Positions 3,792-46,400 of a stretch of DNA of 52,086 nucleotides are shown one piece after another; the stretch's first letter is position 1; every line of letters starts with the position of its first letter. The translations under genes were made by a program, and so were the position numbers. Location: NCBI GenBank assembly GCA_000708835.1, contig DF237538.1:1-52086 (forward strand). Direction: 5' to 3'. The stretch comes from Klebsormidium nitens (taxonomy: Eukaryota; Plantae; Klebsormidiophyceae). The notes beneath the pieces are model-generated. The model made no database searches. It saw nothing but the letters and a program-made list of their open reading frames with translations, and was not told the DNA's origin.

Positions 3792-4025
3792 CCGGGGCAC
3801 TCTCTGTGACATTAGGGTTACGCTACAAACCTGTGACGGTTCACGGCAATCGTCGAGCGCTTTGTTAGGGTTACGTCATATCCAAGTGACATTAGGGTTA
3901 GACACTGACAGTGACAGCCGGGCAGAGTTCTTTTGGTTTTAGTGTTGGAAGCCATTTATCCTGACCCGATTCCACCCGTACTAGAAATTGTACCGCAAAG
4001 TGTACGGTAAAGCTGACAGTCTGAC

Positions 4026-4819
4026 NNNNNNNNNNNNNNNNNNNNNNNNNNNNNNNNNNNNNNNNNNNNNNNNNNNNNNNNNNNNNNNNNNNNNNNNNNN
4101 NNNNNNNNNNNNNNNNNNNNNNNNNNNNNNNNNNNNNNNNNNNNNNNNNNNNNNNNNNNNNNNNNNNNNNNNNNNNNNNNNNNNNNNNNNNNNNNNNNNN
4201 NNNNNNNNNNNNNNNNNNNNNNNNNNNNNNNNNNNNNNNNNNNNNNNNNNNNNNNNNNNNNNNNNNNNNNNNNNNNNNNNNNNNNNNNNNNNNNNNNNNN
4301 NNNNNNNNNNNNNNNNNNNNNNNNNNNNNNNNNNNNNNNNNNNNNNNNNNNNNNNNNNNNNNNNNNNNNNNNNNNNNNNNNNNNNNNNNNNNNNNNNNNN
4401 NNNNNNNNNNNNNNNNNNNNNNNNNNNNNNNNNNNNNNNNNNNNNNNNNNNNNNNNNNNNNNNNNNNNNNNNNNNNNNNNNNNNNNNNNNNNNNNNNNNN
4501 NNNNNNNNNNNNNNNNNNNNNNNNNNNNNNNNNNNNNNNNNNNNNNNNNNNNNNNNNNNNNNNNNNNNNNNNNNNNNNNNNNNNNNNNNNNNNNNNNNNN
4601 NNNNNNNNNNNNNNNNNNNNNNNNNNNNNNNNNNNNNNNNNNNNNNNNNNNNNNNNNNNNNNNNNNNNNNNNNNNNNNNNNNNNNNNNNNNNNNNNNNNN
4701 NNNNNNNNNNNNNNNNNNNNNNNNNNNNNNNNNNNNNNNNNNNNNNNNNNNNNNNNNNNNNNNNNNNNNNNNNNNNNNNNNNNNNNNNNNNNNNNNNNNN
4801 NNNNNNNNNNNNNNNNNNN
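4026..4819. other. Assembly gap (794 N)
   Basis: Run of N. Confidence 1.
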
Positions 4820-6012
4820 CCTATGTTCTTGCCTGTCGTGACCCATCGCGAGACAGCTTCGATGCAATTTGTCGAAAGCGTTACATGCGTTACATATATA
4901 CATGTCAGTGTATACGATTATTCGATCTCGATTTCGATACACCATGTGTGACATATATAAGAATGACGCATTTTTGTTCAAAGGACCTGAACTGAAAGTA
5001 CGGTCCACGCGGAGACCCTGTGAACCAATGATCCCGCGTGTAAGATGTTTTCACACTTTTTTGGAGCCTGAGACACTAACAAAAGGAGTCGACTTCGTCG
5101 TACTGGCGCCAGTGATATTAGAACGCGAGCGCGCAGAACCAGTGGGCTTAGATCGACGGCTTCGGTGCACTTGTCCATCCCATCCACGGCCTTTACTTTT
5201 ATCCTTGGAAAAAAGGCAGTATGGGATGAAATGAGGGGGACTGGCTGGGCGCATCCGGACCATCCAAAGTCATATCCAACGGTTGTCTGGCGCATGCAAG
5301 ACTGGCGCTAAGTTCGTAAGTCTAGTTCGGAAGTTTGCAAACACTGCTTTGCTGTGGCCACATGCTCGCTCTTTCGGCTCTTTAGATGGCTGATATCGAC
5401 GCGTTCGGCCTGTCTCAGGTGGCCAGGGTGATGGTTGACTATCGAATCGAAGAGAGATGCTAAAGACCTGCTGACTCGGATTTTCCGCCAGGTAAGACCG
5501 CCATGCTCGAGCCAAATTGCTGTGGTCGACAGAAAGCCCCGGAGTTATTCTCCGATGTTCGAGAACAGCCCGGGAGCAACCGGGAGGCGTGAACCACCCA
5601 TTCGCATGAGCTATTTTACCCCAGCTGGCAGCTAGCTGCTGATCAGTGTCAACCGGTGGTACTTTCCCCGTCTGCCAATCTCCCCGTTACATTCTACCTA
5701 GTGACGCCCTGCCGGTCTGTACCGTTCGTGCCCGGTCGACAGCAGCTCTTGCTTGCTTCAAAATTGCATCCTTGCTTGCTTGCGTTGTTCCGAGTGGCCG
5801 CGTAGGAGCACTTTGTCAGGGTTGATCCCTCAAGCTTCAGCGTCGTCAAGCAGGTGAAGGTGACTGTCATTGTGGTCATCAAGCGCCTTGAACTTGAAGC
5901 GAACGCCTCCAGCATCACCTCTTAGGGCTCCTATCTACCGGACAAGTTGTGATCAGCCCCCCGACCGGTGCCGAACCCCTTCTCGAAGGTTGTCCACGCG
6001 AGGTTAGCGAAG

Positions 6013-15144: not shown

Positions 15145-18100
15145 CTAAAGGTTTATGTGACTTACCATGTGCCCCGCGTCCTTGACCTGGATAGAAAGAC
15201 GAAGCGATCGTCAAGAGTTTCGCAGCATAAGCGACGCGAATGGTGTCTACAATTGTCGCTTACAAGTCTCGCTTGTTGCGATGCTCAAGGTTCTCTTTTG
15301 ACGCTCGGCAAGACCATGGTACGTCGTTAGCATCTTAGCAGTAATGCTCCAAATAAGAGGGGTCACGACGAGGGGTTTGACTAAGAGACGTCTCTTTTCC
15401 TTTACCATCCATCTCGTCTCTGCCTTGACTAGGAAGTACGGAAGACTCAACAGCGGACGTTAGGAATCTACCGCACGCCAAAGTTTGATGGGGATTGACG
15501 CCCAACACGCCAAACAGCGTGTTCCTTTAGACATGAAGGTGAATTCCTTTTCAGGTCGCACCGCAAGAGCGCTCACAACTCTATGCTTCGCACATGCAAG
15601 TTCCGGCAAAGCGGGCTTTTCGATACTCAGGCCCGCGTCTCCAGCAAAGCAGCCAAAGCTTACAAGCTTGAAAACCCAACAGTGCCCACCTTGAGAAACC
15701 CGAGCAGGTCGGTTCCGGTGAAGTTGCTGGCAAACTCTCTGTCAACCGTGAAGTTAACCCAGGGCGCTTTGTTGTACGCTTCCTGGCCCGACCACTCCAT
15801 AGCCGCCATCCACCGAGAGTTGCCTGAGGGAAGAAAACGAGTCTGTTAACCGAGCCTAACCGCGCGCTTTCTTGGGTTTGGTTGACGACAGCATCTTTAA
15901 CCGTGAAGTACGTCCCTAATTGTGAGGTTTGGTTTGACGCGAGGTTTCGGCTTACAAAGGGCACTGTTCTTCGACGGACCATGACCGCGAGACTTGAAGC
16001 GAATAGGCTGGGCCCCAAAAATGGCTTTGATAAGCCCACGTTCCTTTCTTTATTGACCTCAGTCACTTCGGTCCGGGCTTTTCGGCCTTTACTATTGTTC
16101 GTACAATCTCGATCCGTCGTAGTCGGCATAGGTACACAAGGATTGTAGAAAGGACTGTCTGAAAGGTACGGTGGGACGAAAAACGTTGGTGAGACTCTCG
16201 CAACTGATTCTGTCTACACTGACCGACCCAACTTCAAACCGAGGTCGCACTCGCCCGCTGGTTTTTGGAGCCATCGAACTGTCCTGGTTTGAATGCAGAA
16301 AAGGAAGCGCTCGTCGAAGCTTCATAAGCCCGCCGTCAAAGAGAAACTCACCGATCCAGTTGCAAATGAAGTCGTCCTCGCCCGCAAAATTCAGGAAGCG
16401 GATTCCGTCCTCCAGGAGCGCCGGAATCTTGGGCTCCAGGCTGCGCATGATGTCCGCCAGCATCGCCGTCTGAATCTCGGGACTGGCACAAGAGAGCGAA
16501 TCAAAAACTGGTGTCAAAGAGAGAAGTGTAGAGGTTCCGAATGCCCACCTAGTCAGTTGCAAAGATGCATCCGTCGAACCACTAAATGCATTTGCGGCGA
16601 TCAGGAACGGCATGCAATTTGATACTCAAAGCTCCGAGCTCTGGTCTATCGGTTTGGTTTGAAAAGAGACGGCGCATGGTATCAAAGGAAATGTCAAGCC
16701 CGGACAAGTGATCTAAGATTCGCCAGTTGTTCGAAAGTTGCTGTAGGACAAGCGGCTCTTTAAGAGGTTGACAGCGCTTGCCGGCAGGCCACCCATTCGC
16801 GGTCCTGTACGCCGAGCTCCTTCTTGACGGCGGGCTGGTTCAGAAAGCGGTCCAGGTACAAGACATTCTTTGGTTTTGAGGTTTAGGGGTTCAGAGTCTC
16901 GGGTTTGGGTTAAGAGAAAGCGTCTGCACGCGCGCACTTGCAGGCCGCCCAATGGCGATCCTCCACGCCGAGCTCCTTCCTGACGGCGGGCTGATTCAAG
17001 AAGCGGTCCAGGTACGAAAAGTTTTAGCACAGCGGGGGTCCGAAGTCGCACTTCTTGCGGATGTCGTATATCTGAAAAATGAGAATTTAAAGTTGGTAAG
17101 AACACCAGCCTGTGCCGGGTAGGATTATTGTTCACATGCCCTTCCGATTGCGATTAGATTGCAACTTCTTGGAGCAGGTGTTTAGAGGAAGTGGGTCTTT
17201 TAAGTATCGGGTTTAGAGCTTACTATAGAGCCTACAGCTTAGTAAATCTAATCTGTCATGACATCGTAGGTTTGGAACAACATCGCTCTATGCAAGTCTT
17301 TACTTCGTGCTGGGTGTCTCGCCTGTTTGAGCTTCGCTCGTCGCTCCACGTTGTTTGTATGTTCTCTTTTGAGTCGCCGTTCTTGCAGAAATGAGCATCG
17401 TCGCTCAAAGCTATTTAACTAATCTGTTCTCTACGCCTTCTAAATTTTCAACGCAACTTGACCAGCTTCACGGTCCCTTACGCTAGATAGTCTGGGCAAT
17501 CCCAAGGACAAGCGACTCAGCATCGATTTCAATCAGGAAACGCGATCCAGTCTCGATCAAGACACGCGATGCAGTCTCGAGTAAGCTAGATATCACCACA
17601 TATCATGGTGACATCACGGTGACGATTTGCCGAGACATGTAGACCCGCGAGACATCTCTCAGCTAGAGAAGCCCTTGTGTTTCTCGCGTCACATTATGAA
17701 AAACATTTTGTCACCACAAAACTTATCGGGCTCTCACGTTCATGTTGTTCGCTTCCGCCAGGATGGGGTCGACAATTGTCTGGCAAATGTAGAACGCCGC
17801 AACGCAGCTGACAGAGCCGTTGGTGCCGCACGCGTGGATAGCCGTGGCGCATACCGGATACTTTACGCGCAGCGCCTCGTAAGTAGTCTTGGCGATTAGT
17901 TGGTTCTGGTACGCGTAATTGGCGTAAGCGCCATACTGAATGTCGGGTTGGGTCAGCCCGTTCCCGATTGCGATGCCCTGTAGAAAGCAGCAAGAAACGG
18001 TTAATATCTAACCAGACTGACCAACCCAAATGTTAAGAACAGGTTGCGTTTATTCCGGAGGAGTTTGGCAGGCGCGTACTGGTGAACAGAGTTCTGAGAG

Positions 18101-18844: not shown

Positions 18845-18993
18845 AAATAAGCCAGGTATAATAAGCTAACCACACTGGGACGGGTGGGGTTAGATTGAGG
18901 GTTTAGGATGGGTTTGGGTGCGGAGCGGGTAGATTGTTGGATTGGGTTTTGAGTGTTTGTTGGGAGGTTAGCATACCTGGCTCTTATTATACC
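18845..18993 (+). mobile_element. MITE-like element, copy 3 (SCPL-A intron 3)
   Basis: Core ctgggacgggtggggttagattgagggtttaggatgggtttgggtgcggagcggg. Arms AATAAGCCAGGTATAATAAGCTAACC / GGTTAGCATACCTGGCTCTTATTATACCT. Confidence 0.6.
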
Positions 18994-19905
18994 TAAAATA
19001 GTCCGTCATACAGGAATGTTCAGGTACTCGTTTCTAGCACCTATTGCAGGACCGTGGCGTTCAGTACTGATTACCTTGTTCCAAAATTCCTCGGGCTCAT
19101 ACTCATAAGCAGAGCACTATCAGTTCGCCAACTCGAACCTCAAATCACGCTTTTTTTCAGCCAAAATTTGTGCTAGGAATGATACTTTTGGCACGGGTAG
19201 CGACTCTGTATTGACCTTCGAACCTACGCAGAGAGCCCCAACGAGGGGGGTGATAGATTTCTGGCAACTTGATGAGGTCCCAAAGGATGCTGAAAAACGA
19301 ACGGGAGAGTCGTCGGCTGGTTGGAGAGTTGCACTATGTGGCCCGCAACGTTCAGGGCCTCGAGCGGCACAAAAGGAGTTTCGTGGCAGCGCTGTCAAGG
19401 CTGGAATAAAGGAACTGTTTCTGAGAAAACTTCTTGGCAGGCGCCGTGGCGCCAACTAGCTCCTCCAAAACCTTGTTTGCAGAATTAGCTGTTTGCTCTT
19501 ATGTTTTTGGGTGAGGTCCAACTCGTCGAAGCACAGCCGTTCGATGAGTCGCGTTTCGAGCGCCGCAATCAGAAAGCAGTCCCTTAAGGGAAACACATGT
19601 GATCGGTTTAGCTTCGAATCGTAATCGAAGAGCTCCGATCGCCTGCTATGAAAACTCAATTTTTCGTATTTTGGCATGCCCAGTAGCAGTGCTCCTGTGA
19701 AAGCACAAGTTCGAGGGGCCACGGTGCACGGACTCAAGGCCAACTCTAAGATACTGTCACCTGCTGCGACTGTTTGACAGCTGCAAATCAATCCTTCTGA
19801 GGTAGAGGCCAGAGATCGCTTCTTGTCTTTGTGGAATATGCACCAGGAAAACTCGAGAACGAGAGGCAAATGCCAGAAAAAACGACAATTCTACAAAAAG
19901 AACCG

Positions 19906-20042
19906 AATAAGCCAAGATAATTTTGAGCTCCGACTAACACTCGAAAGCCCAAAAACACCTGCTCCGCACCCATGCCCGCCCTCACCACCGAACTAACCCT
20001 ACCCGTCTCAGTGCGCTTACCTCATTACTATCTCGGCTTATT
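19906..20042 (-). mobile_element. MITE-like element, copy 4 (SCPL-A intron 3, opposite orientation to copy 3)
   Basis: Reverse core gctccgcacccatgcccgccctcaccaccgaactaaccctacccgtctcag. Arms AATAAGCCAAGATAAT / ACTATCTCGGCTTATT. Confidence 0.6.
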
Positions 20043-22343
20043 ATCATCTTTTTGAATATACTCGAAAAACCGGCCGTGTTGTCAACAAGCTCACCAGCAG
20101 AAAATCGTACATGTCCTCAGACACGCCCTTCTCGGTGTGCACGATGTCACGCGGGTCGTGGCTATAACTAAATCCGGTGCCGATAGGCTGGTCCACGAAA
20201 ATCAGATTGGCTACCTGCACAATCGCGGGTCACGCTCCGACTTATAATTGTGTTTGCTTCTCTCGAGTGCCATTTACAGTCTCGGCTCTACAACTCCCTT
20301 TCACTGTTGAGACGGCTCTGGGTTCGAATTGCTGCACTTGCAGGAGAATAGAACAAGGTCGCTCTCTGCTTAGAGTCGCCATGGTGATACCGGCTTGATC
20401 GACGGGATTCGAAAAAGCTTCGAAGGTGTTTGATAGCTTCGTCCGATTGACTAACATCCAATGTCCTCATCATCGATGATGCAAAACTTGTACCAGGCCA
20501 AAGGAGGAGGAATGGTGCCTTCACCGCAGCGATCCGAAAATGACGTCATCTGCTCACAAGGCCCTCACAAGAAATCAACTTATGGACATGCCTCAAAATA
20601 GAGAACGGACGCGGATTTATTCACCTTATCCCAGCCATAAGGGTTCCAGCTGAAGCTCCAGTGTTTCGTTGTCAACCTTGAAGGGGCCGTTCTCCGCAAA
20701 CACGTCTAGCTCGCCTGAGCAACCAGGCCCTCCCGTCATCCATAAGACGACAGGGTTGGTAGACTTGTTTTCGCGGGACTCAAAGAAGAAGTAGAACATC
20801 CTGGCACAGGGAACTGGGGGGGTTTGAATAAGTAGAACATCCTGAGCAGATCAAATGGAGCCGGGGCGTTGACGTAGCCGGCGCAAAGTGCTCAAGACAG
20901 AACCCTTGCCAGTCTGTTGTGACTTGACTGATGTCACAAGGTGAACAAATGTCATTATCTTTGAAAGCAATTAGAAACAGTCAGGCAGGGGCTCAGTGCA
21001 TTAGTGAAGCCTGTGGGTGGGTTGCCAGTTTATGGAAGGGGCCAACGTACCACTTGTCTGTGTCGCCTCCGAATGAAGATGTTGTAACTGGCCTTCAAAA
21101 GGAGATGGTGTCAATGGAAGATAACCAGAATGAGGCACTTTCAGCCTTGCATTTTACCCTCACTCTTGACATCTGATTTTTGGACACTCTATTGAGTGCT
21201 TGCTAGGTTGCTGTTCTTGCACAGCAACAAACATCCACCTACCAGCAGCTTCCAATCAAGGAGGAAGTTCAAGAGTTTTGGACATTGACGGCGCACCTAG
21301 CATCGTGCGTCCGGTTGAGGCGGAAGTACCCTGCGTAGTGCCCCAAGTCCTCGTCAGCATTCTCCCCAGCCGGCATTAGCTTCACTGGACTCTCCATCAG
21401 CACTCCTTCCCTTATGCTTCCCTTATTCCCCGCCTCCTCATTGCTCCCCTCCCCTGACGGGCACCTTTTCTGACAAGGCCTCTTTCCCCAGGGTTTCTGG
21501 CATCTCAGCAGCCCCGACCCCTACTTCCGTCGCCTGGGGGGACGACACCCCCAGCTCTGAAGCAAAGGCCTCCAGCCTGGAAGCAGAGAGCTCGTCTTTG
21601 AAGGCATGCAATCTGTCGGAGAACTTGGATTCTACCCAGTCTCGAATGTACGCCATCTCTCGCTCCCAGGCCGGCTCTACGATGGTGCTTGCCGCTGCTG
21701 CCGTCAGGGTGAGGAGGAGCAGGAAGCACTGAAGGGCGGAGGGAGCCATATATTACGGATGTCAAGCCTCAAAGTGAATTAAGCAACTCCTTTTAGCAAC
21801 CAGCGTTCCAGCTTTGACTGCCCTGCTGCCTCACTTGAAAGTCAGACTCCTAGGTTCCAATGCCGTGTTCACATGCGTCTACAGGTTTGTGGCCTGCCAT
21901 TCTCTGCCTGTCACATTTGGACATCTATCATTGCTTTGTCGACCGTCTAGGATTGAAACCTGTTTAAGCCTTGGTCCTGCATCCTCAGGCCCGTCAAGGC
22001 CTCTCTATGAAAGGAGAAGCTTCTGCGGCGGCCTCGGCTCAGGGCTGCATGAGTAACGCAGGTCCTGCAGTTCTGCTGGCATTGCCAGCTCGGGCACCGC
22101 GGCCAGTCTGCAATATATTACCATTAGGTGCGAAGCTGCGGAAGTCGACAATTAACTGTGCTCTGCACAGCTTCTTTTGGGAATATGATCGAACACTCCG
22201 TCGAACACAGCTTCCTTGGGTGCGGAATTGACGGTACCGGTATGCTCCATCGCCGTCGATGATGCCAGGAATGATGCCATAAATGATGAACTCGGTCGGA
22301 GTCGGGTCCAGCTCAGCTTTGTCCAATCTCTCGTCACATACCT

Positions 22344-22708: not shown

Positions 22709-23125
22709 CCTACATACGGTAGCATACATCACGTATACCTACATCACATATACACGATCGTTCTTCTCGATATCCCGGTACGAAGTATCCGTCCTGCAGT
22801 GCCTTCCTGTCCGCAACGTGAATCGCTTTCACATGCATCGAAGCAAAGTGCTAGAATCTGAAAGAGAGGCCATTTGGAAAAGAAGTCGGGACTGGCACCC
22901 AAGTCCCAAATATAATAAGCACTTGATCACGACTTCATAAGTACCTTACAAAAGTCGCACTAGAATGGAGGCCAATTTGAGCAGCACAGAAAGAACAAAG
23001 ATGTTACCACTTGACTATTTTACACAAGCTTGCTTGCAAGTCGTCTTGAAAGTCTACAAAATCTACAGTATAGCAGGTTTTGACCTACAGCTTTTTGACT
23101 GAGAAATCAATGGGCGACCTCCCTG

Positions 23126-26100
23126 TCAGATGACGTAAGCGAGAGGCTGTGCAGCTTCATCGGCCATCTTTTCTCCACGTACGAACCTCCTCAGCATCTC
23201 AAGTGCGTTCTTCGGCTGATCCATTGGGACCTGCGGAAATGGCAAAGTGAGATTGTTGGAAATGTTGCTTGAATCGACACGGAGTAAGTGTCTTGCTGGT
23301 CACGAAGAGCTATTTTGAAGCGGTTGTCGAAACCAGACGCTGACGCAGATCGCAAATCTTTTGCCTTTCGGCTGCCCATGCAGAAGTTGCTCTCAGCTCT
23401 GCAAAGACTCTACTTCAAATCAGTGGCGCATTGAACACGGCAACCATGATACTTTATCCGAAATGAATCTTGTTGCCTGTCCTCTTGCGTATCAACCCAA
23501 TGCCACTACGCTTCCACAACCACCTCCCAAAGTAGTTCAATGAAACAGCTTCGTATACGCTCGATTCCACCAAGACAACGCCACATCGCACCTTAAAAAG
23601 ATAATTTTATTCGACCATGTTCTCCTGCTCAACGCCAGCATCATTTAGGATTGCGCCCAAGCAAGTCAACACATGCTCCCCCTTGCCTCGTCGCTTTCTA
23701 AACAGAGGGCGTCCTAGAAAGAACGCATACGTGACACAAAATGATGTGCACGGGTAGAATCGTAAAAGTCGCGACGACTCACCAGGTGTCCCGCGTCCTT
23801 CACCTGGAAACAAAGATGGAGGAGATGTCAAAACAAATGCGGACTAAGCAATGCAGATGGTAGCCCACAAGTTTTGAACTTACTAACGAGGCGTGGAATT
23901 TTCATCAGACGCTTTGAGGGTGCGCTGGTAGATATCACATCAGCGGTTTCGGATTCCGCAAGGTCACGAGGAGCGGTTTGACAAAAAGCCTTCTCGTTCT
24001 CAGCCTTCTCTTCTCGTTTCTTTTCTGCTTTATTAGGACCGTAAGGTAGACCCGATAGCAGCGCAAAAAAAACTTTACGAACGCCACAGCTCGAAAGGGC
24101 ATTGACATGTCCGCACTTGAAACCGGCGTGTTCCCCCTCTTTAATGAAGTCTATCCATGTGCACTGTGAAAGAATGTACGCAGCACACAAATGCCGACAA
24201 CCTTGTGCTGATCATGTGAGGACTTCCAGGAAAGCACCAAAGGTTTTGAATCGAAGCTCTTAGTGCCCACCTTGAGAAACCCGAGCTGGTCGGTTCCGGT
24301 GAAGTTACCGGCTAACTGCCCGTCAACCGTGAAGTTAACCCAGGGCGCCTTGTTGTACGCTTCCTGGCCCGACCACTCCATGACCGCCACCCACCGAGAG
24401 TTGCCTGAGAGTGAAAAGCAATCCGTTTAACCAGTATACCCGCTCGCTTTCCTGGAGTGAATTGACGGAACGGAAGGAAGGAGAACGCGGACTCCCGGCA
24501 GGTCGGTCTCGGGACCCCCCTCGGCCATAATTCGACGGTTCGGAAAGGTCTTGTTGTCAATCTCAACCGTCGATACCCTGGGGTTATAGCCAAGGGGGCT
24601 TGCGAGGGATGGCCAGGAGTCCGTGTTTCCCCTTCGTCCGTCACGAGAAGAGCTTCTTGAAACTTTTTCGACAGAGAGGTAGGGCTAGGGCTTCAAATGC
24701 CCGCTCAAGCGGAATTTTACGTGTAAGTGCACTATTCCTCGACCAACCATGAGCCGACACTCAACGCGAATCGACTGAGCAAATGTGAGAAGATCAGCCC
24801 CAGAGGCTTTGTATCTCCATCGGGATGCATCGATCCAGGCTGCTTGCAGCGTCACAAGTGTCTGCACGTTACTATATTGCTCATCGACACAATTGCCGAA
24901 ACAGACCATGTAACCGTATGAACCATGGTAAAACTCATACCTGGCAACTTGTTCTGACCTCGCCATTGATCCGTCCAAAGTCACCCACAAGATATCTACT
25001 CGCCCCCGCCAAAGTCGGCATAATTCGAAGTGGAAGAGAACCCTCTCTTCAAACCCCACGGCCGCCATGGTTACAGACACTCACCGACCCAGTTGCAGAT
25101 GAAGTCAAACTCGCCCGCATAGTTCAGAAAGCGGATTCCGTCCTCCAGGAGCGCCGGAATCTTGGGCTCCAGGCTGCGCATGATGTCCGCCAGCATCGCC
25201 GTCTGAATCTTTGGACTGGCACAAGAAGGCGAAACAAAAAGTGGTGTCAAAGAAGGAAGCCTAAAAGTTCCGGGCGCCCACCTAGCCAGTTGCAGATGAA
25301 GTCATCTTCCCCTGCGTAGACGAGAACCTTTACGCCGTCCTCCAGCATGGCCGGAATGACCGGCTCTGAGTTGCGCATCCAGTCGGCCAGCATGGCCGTG
25401 TGAACCGTGGGGCTGCAGGGCGCAACTAAACCAGTTAAGGCGCCTAACCAAGCTGATAACTAAGGAAGATTGAGACCCACGACCCAACTGATTTTGGGGG
25501 CAAATAAGTGCCCTGCTCAACGGACTGATATTGCTCTGAGAAACCAAAGTTGAAGCGAATATCGACCATTACTGCCAGATAGGGCGTACGGCGGCAGTGC
25601 GCGCCTGGTAAAATCTGACCGGACATGGGCTGTCTAGAAAAGCGGTCCCAGGTGGTTGACGAGGCTGCCTAAAACATGTGATCAGGCTCGTTGAAGAGCA
25701 AATCCAAAGTTCGACCCGATCCTCGTATGCGTCCGTCTGAGCAACTCTGTATGCAAAGTCGTGAGAGGATGGACGGCGCGACTTAGAAAGCGCAACCGAG
25801 GGTTTCGTTCTCTCAATGCCGCTCAAAGGGCGGAGGCGGGGAACAGAAAAGATGGTGCTCATCCTAATTTTGCAACCCAAAAGTGCCTCAGATCGTGTGA
25901 ATCGAAAGGGTACTAGCATTTACGAGTATCGCAGTAAACGGGTCAAGCCCGGAGGTTCGAGGTTTGAAGTTCGTCACATATTTTGGGGGCCATGCGAGTC
26001 GTAGGAGTATCAACAGAATATGATACAGCCTTCAGAAGACACAGCAAAGGTGTGAAGAGACGGTCGAAGGAAAGGAGGACGAGTTTGCCCCGTGTACTTA

Positions 26101-29100
26101 CGACATGGACCATTCTTGCCCGTCAAACTCAGAACAGCAGGTCTCATAAATGACGCCTTTCCTTATTATTCACCCCTAGAGAGAATATCAAGCAAACAGA
26201 AAGGCTCAGAATAAATATCAAGCAAACAGAAAGGCTCAGAATAAACATTTCCAAATTAAGGTGAAAGGAAAGGGAAAAGGTATACAGCGCGCACCTGCAG
26301 GCCACCCAGTAGCGGTCCTCCACTCCGAGCTCCTTCTTGACGGCGGGCTGGTTCAGGAAGCGGTCCAGGTACGAAAAGTCGTAGCACAGCGGCGCGACGT
26401 CGCACTTCTTGCGGATGTCGTACACCTGCCGGGGGGCGCACCAACACGTATTCAGTTCCACCGTTGGTGTCTTCTAAATGATTCTTCAGCCTCACAATAA
26501 ATAATCTCGCAGGGTTCTTCACTGGAGAACACTCAAACTCCAAAGTGACAAGTGAGAACTCGGGCTCCGACGTTGATCTTGTCGGCTTCCGTGAGAATGC
26601 GCACAACGAGCGTCTGGCTGATGTAGACCCACTACGACACAGCTGAGGAAGCCCTCGATGCTTTTCAAACATTATCGGCCTCGCAAACAACTCTGACTCG
26701 GCGGGACTTTGTAGCTCGAAAGTATTAAACTTTTCAAGGTTTACGGGAAAAAAGAAGCTTCCTCTCGTTGATGTTGTTGGCGTCCGCCAGTATGCGCAAA
26801 ACAATCGTCTGGCAAATGAAGAGCGCCGCAATGCAGATGATGGAGCCCTGGTGCTTTCAGAAACAGTTCTGAGCCTCACAAAAAGAGACTGATTTGTCCG
26901 ATACTTGCACCTCGAACTATCATTTTCAAGAAAAATGATGAGAGTTCCGGGCTCTCACGTTAATGTTGTTCGCCTCCGCCAGTATGCGCACGACGATCGT
27001 CTGGCAGATGTAGAGCGCCGCAATGCAGCTGATGGAGCCCTTGGTGCCGCACGCGTGGATGGCCATGGCGCAAACCGGGTACTTGATGCGCAGCCCCTCG
27101 TACGTGATCTTGGAAATCAGGTGGTTCTGGTACGCGAAATCGGCGTATGCGCCGTATTGGATGTCGGGTTGCGTGAGGCCGTTCCCAATTGCAATGCCCT
27201 GCAGAGAGCGAGAAACAGGTCTGAAATGTACCAGCTTCAAGGGACTCTTGACGAACCAAAGTGTGGTTGCAAACGGGATGCAAGCATTTCTTAAGCTCGG
27301 ACTTGACAGGCCGGTTCCGGGTAGAAAGCTCTGGGAAGAAGTGCCGTTCCTAACCACAATGCCAGATCTGAAAGTTCTTCAGCGACACTAAATGCTTTCA
27401 AGAAGATTCTCGTAAGATATTTCAGGCTTTGGAGGGCTCTCTGCAGGGCGTCTTTGTGCTACGGTTCTGAAGAAGTTGTAAATGCTCAATGCGCTGAGTC
27501 ATTCTCAGCGCTGTAGTACTGAATGTCGGGCTGTGTCAGGGCGTTCAATCGCGAGGCCCTGCACAAAGCAAGGGTTCCGACAATCTCCTTTAACGTTAGG
27601 TACTGGATGCCAGACAAACGCTGTGCAGAGTCTGGTCCACTTTCGGGGTGAGAAACCTCGACGGTGTCACGAGGATATTGCAAGCACAATACGTAGCCAC
27701 AGGGGACATTCACTGCTGCTTGATCTCAGGCATCCAGGCGACCGCCAGCATCAACGTCAGTGGGCTGATGATCACAAACTGATCGTGGAGCAGGTTTTCG
27801 ACTGATCCCTACTGGAGCAAATCCAGTGAAAACTCCTCGAGATAGGAGAGACCAGACGAAATTGTGCTTTCGCGACTTGACTGACAATGGGGCGGTGCGA
27901 AAAGACTTTTGAGTTGGCGAAAACCGAAGCATGCGCACCTTGAGGTTGAGGTGCGGCCCCTGCTTGGCCTTGTTCATGGCGTGCACCTTGGCGGCGACCG
28001 CGGGGACGTAGTGGCCAGCATACGATTCGCCGGTGATGAAGAAGTCGTGGTCCTTGTACTCGGGGTGCGCTTCGTAGAAGGCCTGCACGGGAAATGATAA
28101 CAAGCATTGAGTTCATTTGAGATACGGCTAGGTTGAGATAGGTCAACGTCGGAGGAACGGATGGGATTAGTTTGGGGGTTAACGAGGGTCCAGGTGCGGA
28201 GCGCGATGGCTTTATGTCCGGGATTTCAAGCGATGCGTCCTCCCGGTTTTCTGTTGGTTTTCTCAGCGTGGCTCAACTCAACCTGAAAATGAGACTTGCT
28301 AGTGGGACGTGGATATAAAGACGCCGAGGAAGCTGGAAGAAAGGATTTGATCGAGCGAGTCCGTGTATGTGAGAATCTAATGAACCGGCCAAGACAGGAA
28401 GCTTGTACAGGACGCTTGCAAGGCAGAAAGCTGGGACAGTTGCCTGACACCCCTGCCCGACAAGAGGTGTCCTCCCCGGAAAGATCCCGTTCTGATTACA
28501 TGAGGTTCTGCCTGTGAGAGGCCTGTAGGAACTGGGAGAAGGTGCTTTGAGGATGCTGTGACGGCTCGATGAGATGCTGGTGTCTGGTGCGGTCCTAGGG
28601 TCTGATGGCTGGAGTGACGAAGTCGTCAAGTTCCTCAGGAAGTCGCAATCTGTAGTCATGATATTTGACACCCCGCAAAAGATGCCCGGAAAAATCATGT
28701 GAGGCTGCCGCGCTGAGTTTGACGAAGGTTCTGGAAATGAGCAGTGGTGTCTAGAGACAGCACGAAAAAGATGGATACCTAGTGCAAGAAGCTAAAGCTG
28801 GCCGGAAGAGGTTAACCTACGAAACAGGCTACGAAGACCGTCTACTTAGCGGTTGTAAATCCCTCTTGAGGCAGAGGCGGCAAAGGGCTTCATTGGCTAG
28901 TTCTGTACCAGGACGCTCGATCACGGCAGACACGCAAAGAGAAAAGCGGCCAGATTGTTGTGAGGCTCACCAGCAGGAAATCGTACATGTCCTCAGACAC
29001 GCCCTTCTCGGAGTGCACGATGTCACGCGGATCGTGGCTGTAACTGAAGCCGGTGCCAATAGGCTGGTCCACATACACCAGGTTGGACACCTGCAAAAAC

Positions 29101-43496: not shown

Positions 43497-46400
43497 TTAG
43501 TACATCTGGTTACTCGCAAACCGTTTCTCAAACCGGACCACCTTAACCTCCACGGGGTTCTCGTCGTCGCCCTTCCGGAACGCCGCCACCTCGATCGTCG
43601 TCGCGCCGAACTTCATCCGCACGTCGAATGAGCGCTGGCCACGTGGCAGGTCTTCCATGTCGAGCGAGAACCCAAAGTCTTCTTCCACTCCGTCGTCGTC
43701 CGCGAATCGTGGGTCGCGCTTATCGGTGGTTAGTAAAAAGACGGGGCACTGGGTTTGGTCCAATTTGGACGGCCGGAAGGAGTGCCGGATCTCCGAATCG
43801 ACCAGCACCTGCCAAAAGAGAAAAGCATTGAACGGCCGAATTGGCTCATTGTGGCTCTTCATAAGAGTTGGTTGCTAGTGCTCCAGAAGCACCGAGTCTC
43901 TATTTGTTGAAGGCCAGAGTAATCAGAGTTTGCATGGACAGATTAACTTGCATTTCTGATGACACCTTATACATGGTCGCCCAGAGAAGTGCGCCGGCGG
44001 CCGGTTGACCCATTTTACAAGTGGGCATTAAGGTTGAACAGATTCTGTTGGTTCCTCATATTGTTGTTGATCACGCAAGACGTGTTTAGAATCTGCTCGC
44101 AGAATATCCCATAGGCTATGGGTTGCACTAGAGAAAACCGACATAAACCAGACAAGTCGATATCGAAAAGACGAGATACAGGATGAAAGTACGAAAAACG
44201 AGAGGAAAGCAGATAGAAATACACGAGTCCGTCTAAAGCTACACAGAGAGAGGAAAGAAACAGGAAACAAAGGAGGAGGAGGAAACGAAAAGAGAGGAAC
44301 GAACGAAAGATAAGACGGCACCTGGTCGCCGTTGCGCACGAAAATGTTGAACGAGTTGCTGACGTGGAAGCAGCCGTCCTCGTCGTGGAACCACTTTTTG
44401 TCCTCGGGGTCGCCCGGCCGGAATTCGCGCGCGCACTTTATACCGTACGTCTTGCGCGAGGTGCGCTCCGTGATGATGGACGGGTCCAGCCCGAAGAGGA
44501 CCGCGCCCTGGCAGATGGCCGTGCCTGGAAAAAGGGGTTACAAGGGGTTAAGCTCACTTCGTGAAGGTTTGATTTCTTTAAGAAGGCATCCGAAAAAGCA
44601 GAATTGTGCGGTTGGCAAAGAGGGGATTGAGGAGTACCGCGAACGGCAAGCCGAGGCGAAGTCTGTCTCTGTCAGTCACGCCCGTGTGCAAGAGGCAAAC
44701 AAAAGGTTCATGCGGGGTCAAACCTGGGCAAGTGCGTAAAAGTTTCTGAGAAACAATAGGACGCTTCATAGGGTTTGAGATGGTTTGAACGTTTTGATCT
44801 GAAAAACACTCAAAGCCAGCGCCTGCGTTCACCCCTTACCAAGCCCTTGGTCTTTTTCCATTCCAAACATCCATCTTGTCTCCTGTAGACTTTCTCATCC
44901 AACTAAAACAACTCTGACCTGGCTCCGGCGGCGTGACTATGTTGGCTACCCGGTGCGCGAATGTCTCAGTCACGCGCTTGATGAGGTACGGCGACTGGGA
45001 GAACCCCCCGACCAGGAAGAGCTGGTCACACTTGGGGCTCGCCGCCAGCTGCGCGTCGATGAGCGCCAAAATCTTATCCAGCGTCGGGTCGAAGATGGAG
45101 CGCAGCTCCGCAGGACTGATGATCAGCCGGTCCCTGCGGAGAGGACGGATTCCGGCGGATAAGTTGGGCGGATTCTGTCGACAGATTGGGGAAAACTTCT
45201 AAGGAGAAGGTCTACCCAGGGTCCGGTAGTTTATGGAGCGAAGCTCCGCAGGGGTGATGATCTGCGCGTAATGATCTGCCAGTCCCTGCGGAAGGAGCGG
45301 ATTCCGCGGATGATGGATAGCAGAATATAACGCCCTGGGTGCGATTTTTGGATCTGGTTGAGCCGCGTTCCCGTCCAGCACTGGGTTGAAGACGAAGCAG
45401 AGCTCCTGATCATCATCAGGTGGATGTTGCACATTACAATAAGGCACAGAGAGCGAAGTGGTAACGAGTTTCTGAAGAAGAGGTACTGAAGTGACTATAA
45501 GGGCCCTTTTGAGGGGACAGTCACTTGAAGATACCATGGCGAGTTTTTGCGAGGAAAGGGTGCAGCATCAAACAAATTAACTGTGCCTTTGCGTCACCTG
45601 ATCCGCAAAACTGAGCGAGTTATGCAATCTCATACTTCTATCAACATCACCCGAGTTCGCCACTGCTTTGAACTGATACTCCAGATAGCTATTGAGCGAT
45701 CTCTCGTCCTCGAAGTGGGTTTCCTGTCCTTGGAATGGGTTACCTGTCCTCCAAGTGGGTTACCAGTCCTCAAAGAGGGTTACCGGTCCTCGAAGTGGGT
45801 TACCTATCTCAAAGTGGGCTACCTGTCGTCGATGAGGGTTACCTGTCCTCGAAGTAGGTTACTTGTCCTCAAAGTAGGTTACTTGTCCTCAAAGTAGGTT
45901 ACCTGTCCTCAAAGTGGGTTAACTGTCCTGAGAGTGGGTTACCTGTCCTCACAGTGGATTACCTGTTTTCTCTCAACGTGGGCTGCCTGTCCTCTAAGTG
46001 GGTTACTTGTCCTCAAAGTGGGTTACCTGTCCTCGAATTGGGTTCCCTGTCCTCAAGTGGGTTAATGTCCTCAAAGTGGGTTACCTGTCCTCAAAGTGGG
46101 TTCCGTGTCCTCAAAGTGATTTACCTGTGTTCGAAGTGCGTTAGCTGTCCTCAAAGTGGGTTACCTCTCCACAAAGTGAGTTACACGTCCTCAGAGTGGG
46201 CTACCTTTCCTCAAAGTGGGTTACCTGACCTCGAACTGACTTACCTGTCCTCGAAGTGGTTTACCTGTCCTCGAAGTGATTTACCTGTTCTCAAAGTGGG
46301 TTACCTAAAAAAAGGCTTACCTGTCTTCAAACACCTCGGAGTCTTCTTTCTCCCACATGGCCGCCAGCCTGGCCGGCAGGTCGAAGACGACCGGGTTGCC

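Follow-up and report, generated by a model that had tools for sequence, protein, structure and literature searches.

Does a single carboxypeptidase gene of the streptophyte alga Klebsormidium nitens choose between two copies of the exon that carries its catalytic Asp, and does this choice give the alga two enzymes from one gene? Pairs of homologous, mutually exclusive exons are a hallmark of animal genes, whereas plants offer few documented cases. The question is raised by contig DF237538.1 of the K. nitens assembly GCA_000708835.1, whose positions 1 to 52,086 (52,086 nucleotides (nt), hereafter the window) we analyzed. The initial annotation of this DNA had proposed that two adjacent homologous exons, here called 7a and 7b, are mutually exclusive and swap the segment of a carboxypeptidase that holds the catalytic Asp and lines the S1 pocket. 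The data described below make it highly probable that exon 7 of this gene, hereafter gene 1, was duplicated in tandem long ago and that the two copies are now mutually exclusive exons.

Gene 1 encodes a serine carboxypeptidase of peptidase family S10 that resembles yeast carboxypeptidase Y (CPY). We placed the introns 3′ of exon 4 by RNA junctions, all of which are of the GT..AG type, and arrived at the following model.

30537-23126, minus strand: gene 1, CPY-like S10 serine carboxypeptidase of Klebsormidium nitens, with 10 coding exon positions.
30537-30089, minus strand: exon 1, boundaries from splice motifs and reading frame.
29700-29526, minus strand: exon 2, boundaries from splice motifs and reading frame.
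29090-28971, minus strand: exon 3, from splice motifs and reading frame; the junction of exons 3 and 4 is visible as a loose contig end.
28082-27939, minus strand: exon 4, from splice motifs and reading frame.
27198-26959, minus strand: exon 5, from RNA junctions.
26425-26295, minus strand: exon 6, constitutive, upstream of the pair; its donor at 26295 is spliced to 7a or 7b.
25412-25282, minus strand: exon 7a, 131 nt, residues 421-463 of isoform A, with Trp431, Asp456 and the catalytic Asp457.
25281-25216, minus strand: spacer between 7a and 7b, 66 nt, with the 7a donor GTGGGC, the motif TTGAC, a pyrimidine tract and the 7b acceptor CAG.
25215-25085, minus strand: exon 7b, 131 nt, residues 421-463 of isoform B, with Ile431, Phe456 and the catalytic Asp457.
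24404-24271, minus strand: exon 8, constitutive, downstream of the pair; its acceptor at 24404 takes 7a or 7b.
23803-23783, minus strand: exon 9, a microexon, from RNA junctions.
23230-23126, minus strand: exon 10, from RNA junctions.

With either version of exon 7 the product is in frame and 549 amino acids long. Both isoforms contain the three motifs of the catalytic triad, GESYAG (Ser268), DFICNW (Asp457) and DAGHLVP (His514), whose columns are invariant or nearly so in 50 homologues, and the Peptidase_S10 profile (PF00450) is matched by the whole protein as well as by the translations of both exons 7. The N-terminus is signal-peptide-like, and the enzyme is predicted to be a vacuolar or secreted carboxypeptidase of the CPY-like S10 type. 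Structural models of both isoforms on CPY had been suggested in the initial annotation; our modelling covered isoform B, for which AlphaFold2 gave a mean predicted local distance difference test score (pLDDT) of 80.7 and for which the best superposition was with yeast CPY (1ysc; template modelling score (TM) 0.88, root-mean-square deviation 2.4 Å). The 7b model of gene 1 is identical to the public protein GAQ90008.1 (P0271). Since GAQ90008.1 is the 7b form and its 90% cluster lacks the 7a form, isoform A is unannotated.

We compared the two exons with each other. Reading along the minus strand, with slashes at the exon borders, the pair has the layout ...CCCTGCAG/CCCCACGG...CAACTGGCTAG/GTGGGC..(66 nt)..GTGCCAG/TCCAAAGA...AACTGGGTCG/GTGAGT. 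Both exons have CAG acceptors and are followed by donors GTGGGC (7a) and GTGAGT (7b); their description in the initial annotation as two intact 131-nt homologous exons of equal length and phase, 66 nt apart, was correct to the base. When aligned without gaps, they agree at 92 of 131 nt (70%) and in 29 of 43 full codons, in the same frame, with 67% amino acid identity between their translations. A direct-repeat search returned the pair as a 149-nt repeat with 70% identity and 197-nt spacing, and the two translations match PF00450 at the same profile positions (311/313-351). This likeness is far beyond chance. Both exons retain the catalytic Asp, and the motifs quoted earlier, AGEDDFICNW in 7a versus AGEFDFICNW in 7b and DWMRN versus DIMRS, were also correct. 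Finally, a frame check bore out the claim that the presence of both exons, or of neither, shifts the reading frame: 7a and 7b together lead to a stop codon inside 7b, and skipping of both leads to a stop in exon 8, so that the stop is premature in either case.

Splicing of the pair was analyzed with RNA contigs of four runs (X3, X22, X31 and X20, from four studies with two organism labels, A and B), which were mapped on 23000-28200. The four junctions that had been predicted from the DNA, 26295>25412 and 25282>24404 for 7a and 26295>25215 and 25085>24404 for 7b, were all present at similar depth in the contigs of four of four runs, with GT..AG borders on the gene strand; both exons, and not one alone, were thus spliced in in every run. 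The junction joining 7a to 7b (25282>25215), whose absence had likewise been predicted, and a junction of exon 6 with exon 8 were not found among the joints of these contigs. The joint-bearing contigs are 190 nt long, and in each of them one 131-nt exon is flanked by 30 nt of exon 6 and 28 nt of exon 8, which is the pattern of a two-branch bubble between constitutive exons 6 and 8. Depths of the 7a and 7b branches were 362 and 336 in X3, 35 and 57 in X22, 9.9 and 11.2 in X31, and 14.7 and 10-17 in X20. In addition, 14 runs from 6 studies contain exactly 0.72 of the sampled 31-mers from 25085-25412, and no run contains a higher share; about 0.68 is expected for both exons without the spacer. 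The mature mRNAs of gene 1 appear to hold one of the two exons between exons 6 and 8, 7a about as often as 7b.

Two branches of this kind could also come from two near-identical loci or haplotypes with one exon each, instead of alternative splicing of one gene. The window does hold a tandem paralogue, gene 2, with only a 7b-type exon, of which a stretch of >80 nt is identical to 7b of gene 1.

21749 to about 14335, minus strand: gene 2, tandem paralogue directly downstream of gene 1, with 82% protein identity to it.
16561-16549, minus strand: remnant of the lost 7a of gene 2 (its last ~13 nt), from alignment.
16548-16483, minus strand: gene 2 homologue of the 66-nt spacer, from alignment.
16482-16352, minus strand: the single exon 7 of gene 2, of 7b type, from alignment.

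However, the contig with exon 7b matches gene 1 without a mismatch over all 131 nt and both flanks, including the gene-1-specific TTT codon, while the flanks differ from the paralogue at at least 5 positions in the last 30 nt of exon 6 and at 3 positions in the first 28 nt of exon 8. Since these flanks fit gene 1 and not the paralogue, the 7b signal does not come from the paralogue, and we rejected the near-identical exon of gene 2 as its source. Furthermore, the only K. nitens proteins among the close homologues are those of genes 1 and 2, and the genomic contigs of a related alga (see below) hold both exons in one locus. We consider it extremely unlikely that two loci, rather than one alternatively spliced gene, account for the two forms.

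In gene 2 itself, the reading frame is shifted in exons 1 and 2 and interrupted by a TAA in exon 6, and most of 7a is deleted. The gene is annotated as a 406-amino-acid "Serine carboxypeptidase" (P0002) by a model that skips the GGPGCSS (oxyanion-hole) exon, and a contig of run X3 runs from exon 8 sequence into its intron 8. Gene 2 is probably a transcribed pseudogene. Because it is degenerate, we rejected it as independent evidence for 7b and used it only to date the exon duplication: as gene 2 retains the homologue of the spacer and the tail of 7a, the exon duplication is older than the gene duplication. In gene 2, the 3′ part of exon 6 is also repeated in tandem (minus strand, 16775-16867 and 16931-17023), with a distance of 156 nt between the two copies; the second of them is without a normal GT donor.

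As to which copy resembles the ancestral exon, position 11 of exon 7 is Trp in 125 of 138 homologues (mostly of the land-plant SCPL48/49 type), and marine green-algal metagenome contigs contain a single-copy segment that is 72-81% identical to 7a and includes His4, Trp11, EPVIP, Met22 and GEDDFICNWL. The prevalence of Trp11 and the 7a-like marine segments together indicate that 7a is the ancestral type. Exon 7b, which has Gln4, Ile11, Lys18 and, ahead of the catalytic Asp, Ser or an aromatic residue, is a derived type, so far known only from Klebsormidium; this type is present in K. nitens, in K. subtile transcript P0151 and in P0152/L001-L003, the transcript and genomic contigs of the related alga. 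Our survey of metagenome contigs yielded no further twin-exon loci, and the marine green algae gave single-copy, 7a-like segments only.

Gene 1 also contains partial copies of another exon, exon 5, in its introns.

26850-26761 and 26628-26560: partial copies of the 3′ end of exon 5, in intron 5.
27570-27517: partial copy of the 5′ end of exon 5, in intron 4.

The intronic partial copies are truncated or have stops, and their RNA depth in K. nitens is zero or at background; the partial copies of exon 5 in this species are dead pseudo-exons. No significant match to a third, decayed copy of exon 7 was found in K. nitens. The introns of the gene in the related alga contain partial copies of exon 2 and exon 4 as well as extra fragments of exon 7.

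L001/L002, 11248-11310, 11370-11459 and 11907-11966: truncated or degenerate exon-7-like copies; the intact 7a/7b pair is preceded by two of them and followed by one.
L003, 11811-11879: truncated or degenerate exon-7-like copy after the intact pair.

These exon-7-like fragments are extra rounds of duplication that decayed, and the carboxypeptidase gene seems prone to tandem duplications of 150-370 nt. A shorter repeat, a perfect 30-nt tandem duplication (2.1 copies), lies at 26184-26245 in intron 6 of gene 1.

We further investigated whether both exons are conserved, using the related alga represented by genomic contigs L001-L003 from the Joint Genome Institute (JGI) metagenomes 3300060284 and 3300060285 and by transcript P0152, whose protein is 79% identical to that of K. 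nitens gene 1. An orthologue survey had been proposed as a check on the pair, and this alga keeps it intact: in L001-L003 both exon types are present without defects, the AG and GT sites are conserved, and the spacer is exactly 66 nt. The comparison of K. nitens with the relative, including the ratio of nonsynonymous to synonymous divergence (dN/dS), gave the following values.

Exon 7a: dN/dS 0.04-0.07, dS 0.8-1.0, identity 85%.
Exon 7b: dN/dS 0.09-0.11 (0.12 for L003 versus L001), dS about 1.3, identity 77-79%.
Spacer: identity 71-77%, no indel.
Flanking intron: identity 35-44%, many gaps.

The 66-nt length of the spacer is invariant in four sequences (gene 1, the paralogue, L001 and L003). 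At this distance, where synonymous sites are saturated, both exons and the spacer are maintained by purifying selection in the relative. Neutral divergence of 7b had been named beforehand as an outcome that would speak against the pair; compared between species, 7b instead showed dN/dS of 0.09-0.12. Within L003 (11439-11764), 7a and 7b have the peptide EDGIQVLIYAGE in common and differ there at four synonymous sites, and where the relative's 7a and 7b share EDGIQVLIYAGE, the peptide in 7b of K. nitens and of K. subtile is the diverged EDGIRFLNYAGE. Either 7b changed in a lineage-specific manner, or the two exons underwent conversion long ago. In L001, the orthologous carboxypeptidase gene is followed downstream by an open reading frame for a retroelement reverse transcriptase (RVT_1, RT_RNaseH) at 18932-20135.

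These values bear on a simpler explanation, in which one exon alone gives a working enzyme and splicing of the other, a recent or decaying duplicate, amounts to noise. The gene is indeed rich in partial tandem copies of exons, most of them dead, the annotation and the transcripts of K. subtile and the related species show 7b only, and nonsynonymous change in 7b has been two to three times faster than in 7a. However, the dead copies show zero or background RNA depth, whereas the 7a and 7b forms were found at about equal depth in the four runs, are both in frame and have the invariant family residues intact. Moreover, dN/dS is ≤0.12 for both exons over a dS of about 1, and neither has acquired an indel or a stop. 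It is therefore very unlikely that one of the two exons is mere noise, and we return to the reading in which both are functional parts of gene 1.

We next considered what the swap would do to the protein. In a phmmer search against the PDB, exon 7 aligned with residues 302-344 of CPY, and the alignment confirmed that the Trp of 7a corresponds to CPY Trp312, as the initial annotation had stated; the Asp corresponds to the catalytic Asp338. The Ile-Cys of exon 7 (in DFICNW) aligns with Ile340 and Cys341 of CPY, which form the S1 subsite (PMC2773364). In the model of isoform B, exon 7 comprises a helix at 421-431 that ends at the Trp/Ile site, a loop, a helix at 439-444, a strand at 448-454 and the loop of Asp457. 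The isoforms differ at 14 of 43 residues, and every invariant family residue is kept in both. Seven positions are type-specific in every species compared: 3, 4, 11 (W in 7a, I in 7b), 15 (S versus L or M), 18 (V versus K), 22 and 36 (Asp versus Phe, Tyr or Ser), the last of which, residue 456, adjoins the catalytic Asp. Positions 11 and 36 stand out among them. Taken together, these features suggest that the isoforms are two isozymes, and the chances seem evenly balanced that they differ in P1 preference or in kinetics and catalytic efficiency.

Exclusive splicing could be real and the isoforms nevertheless equivalent, with the pair kept because the loss of either exon's splice signals would disturb splicing. 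The two forms occur at a ratio close to 1:1 that changes little from run to run, consensus residues are mixed with non-consensus ones in each exon, and other family members have aliphatic residues at the Trp position, all of which would fit such equivalence. On the other hand, the differences at positions 11 (W/I), 18 (V/K), 15 (S/L-M) and 36 (Asp/aromatic) have been held apart across a dS of about 1, which is unexpected if the exons are interchangeable, and the swapped segment lines the active site. We consider equivalent isoforms unlikely, though a reading to be taken seriously.

How might the choice between 7a and 7b be enforced? At the protein level, exclusivity would be ensured by the frame incompatibility, and nonsense-mediated decay would presumably remove mRNAs with double inclusion or double skipping. 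At the level of splicing, a steric block may operate, as the donor of 7a lies only 35 nt from the likely branch point of 7b. The motif in question, TTGAC at 25250-25246 (A at 25247), is separated from the 7a donor by 35 nt and from the 7b acceptor by 31 nt; it is branch-point-like and the putative branch point of 7b. A steric model is plausible because the spacer is 66 nt long, its length is invariant in the four sequences, and TTGAC or TTAAC is found 35 nt from the 7a donor. Introns of 66-nt size are spliced in many plants and invertebrates, and we give the steric model somewhat less than an even chance. Two other mechanisms were considered and rejected: incompatibility of U2 and U12 splice sites, since all donors are of the U2 type (GTG/GTR), and competing RNA structures, since the one 16-nt inverted repeat is at chance level and the spacer shows no covariation. 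A scan of the window against Rfam gave no hits.

The most complete reading of the locus combines these elements: the Klebsormidium pair would consist of ancient, lineage-conserved exclusive exons that give two S1 pockets (Trp431 versus Ile431, together with a change in the residue next to the catalytic Asp), with the 66-nt spacer sterically enforcing the choice. As a whole we put this forward tentatively, as possible but well short of probable. Several points weigh against our main reading of the pair. The RNA support consists of assembled contigs and not of reads, so that rare forms (e.g., 7a+7b) can drop out and depth is only approximate; these contigs are derived from short reads and include no full-length molecule. 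The 7a share varies little over the four runs (about 38-52%), with no sign of regulation. For the spacer, no compensatory pairs were seen in the alignment, which is a small sample, and no figure was found for the minimum intron of Klebsormidium, the text and the searched supplements of the K. nitens genome paper making no mention of introns. With respect to function, what can be said of the activities of the isoforms is deduced from their sequence and from the model of isoform B. A few apparently ordinary homologues have a residue other than Trp at the position of Trp431, and the change need not be dramatic. Moreover, CPY Trp312 is reported to be an S1-pocket residue in work on the structure and mutagenesis of CPY (Endrizzi 1994; Olesen and Breddam 1995), and our literature search did not confirm this.

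The pair itself is readily compared with known systems. Homologous mutually exclusive exons that arose by tandem exon duplication have been catalogued in animals (Pillmann 2011, PMC3228551; Hatje 2017, PMC5740500). Like those exons, 7a and 7b are homologous, have equal length and phase and conserved splice sites, and show bridging junctions to both neighbours with no joining junction; their length is not divisible by 3, and joint inclusion shifts the frame. Their ends also lie in or beside secondary-structure elements, and the swap would tune the protein rather than rebuild it. By the published criteria (PMC3228551, PMC5740500), 7a and 7b are a textbook pair of homologous mutually exclusive exons, and their junctions are of the kind by which such exons have been validated in human genes (Hatje 2017, PMC5740500). 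Unlike in the animal cases, the host is a streptophyte alga and the gene family is that of the S10 peptidases. Mutually exclusive exon splicing was said in the 2014 Kassiopeia paper (PMC3923563) not to have been described for Arabidopsis, and the remark in the initial annotation that such exons are uncommon in the green lineage holds as far as this literature goes. Our literature search found no report of mutually exclusive exons in S10 peptidases and no Klebsormidium paper on the topic. What is new here is the host lineage, the gene family and the unannotated isoform A.

With regard to mechanism, the closest parallel is α-tropomyosin, whose exons 2 and 3 exclude each other since the donor lies too close to the branch point. 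The 7a/7b spacer resembles this steric type in being very short (66 nt) and in having a branch-point-like motif 35 nt from the donor, but unlike for α-tropomyosin, steric exclusion of 7a and 7b is a proposal drawn from the sequence. The steric class of mutually exclusive exons has been placed at under 50 nt (Hatje 2017, PMC5740500). As for the protein, gene 1 resembles CPY (1ysc, 1cpy, 1wpx) and the plant SCPL48/49 enzymes in having PF00450, the catalytic triad and DFICNW, and 7a has the DWMRN of the family. It differs from CPY in its long N-terminal extension, which is mostly of low confidence in the model, and in having the catalytic His on a 21-nt microexon (23783-23803, KDAGHLV), both junctions of which were present in one X3 contig at a depth of 685. 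In contrast to CPY and SCPL48/49, one isoform of gene 1 has Ile in place of the conserved Trp.

Elsewhere in the window, a dip in GC content at about 4000-4850 is an assembly gap (a run of N) and not AT-rich DNA. Tandem Repeats Finder reported a 20-nt minisatellite of about 30 copies at 45706-46306, which corresponds to the splice-donor-like repeat mentioned in the initial annotation.

Taken together, 7a and 7b provide a clean case from a streptophyte alga, with RNA evidence at the level of junctions in four independent datasets and with both copies under purifying selection. Of this carboxypeptidase the public annotation shows a single isoform, to which isoform A adds a second. In addition, the selected twin exons stand beside decayed, silent partial copies, which offers a natural view of how tandem exon duplicates arise and are fixed or lost. 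Since the exchanged segment belongs to the wall of the active site in a hydrolase that is well understood, any functional effect of choosing 7a or 7b would be directly testable.

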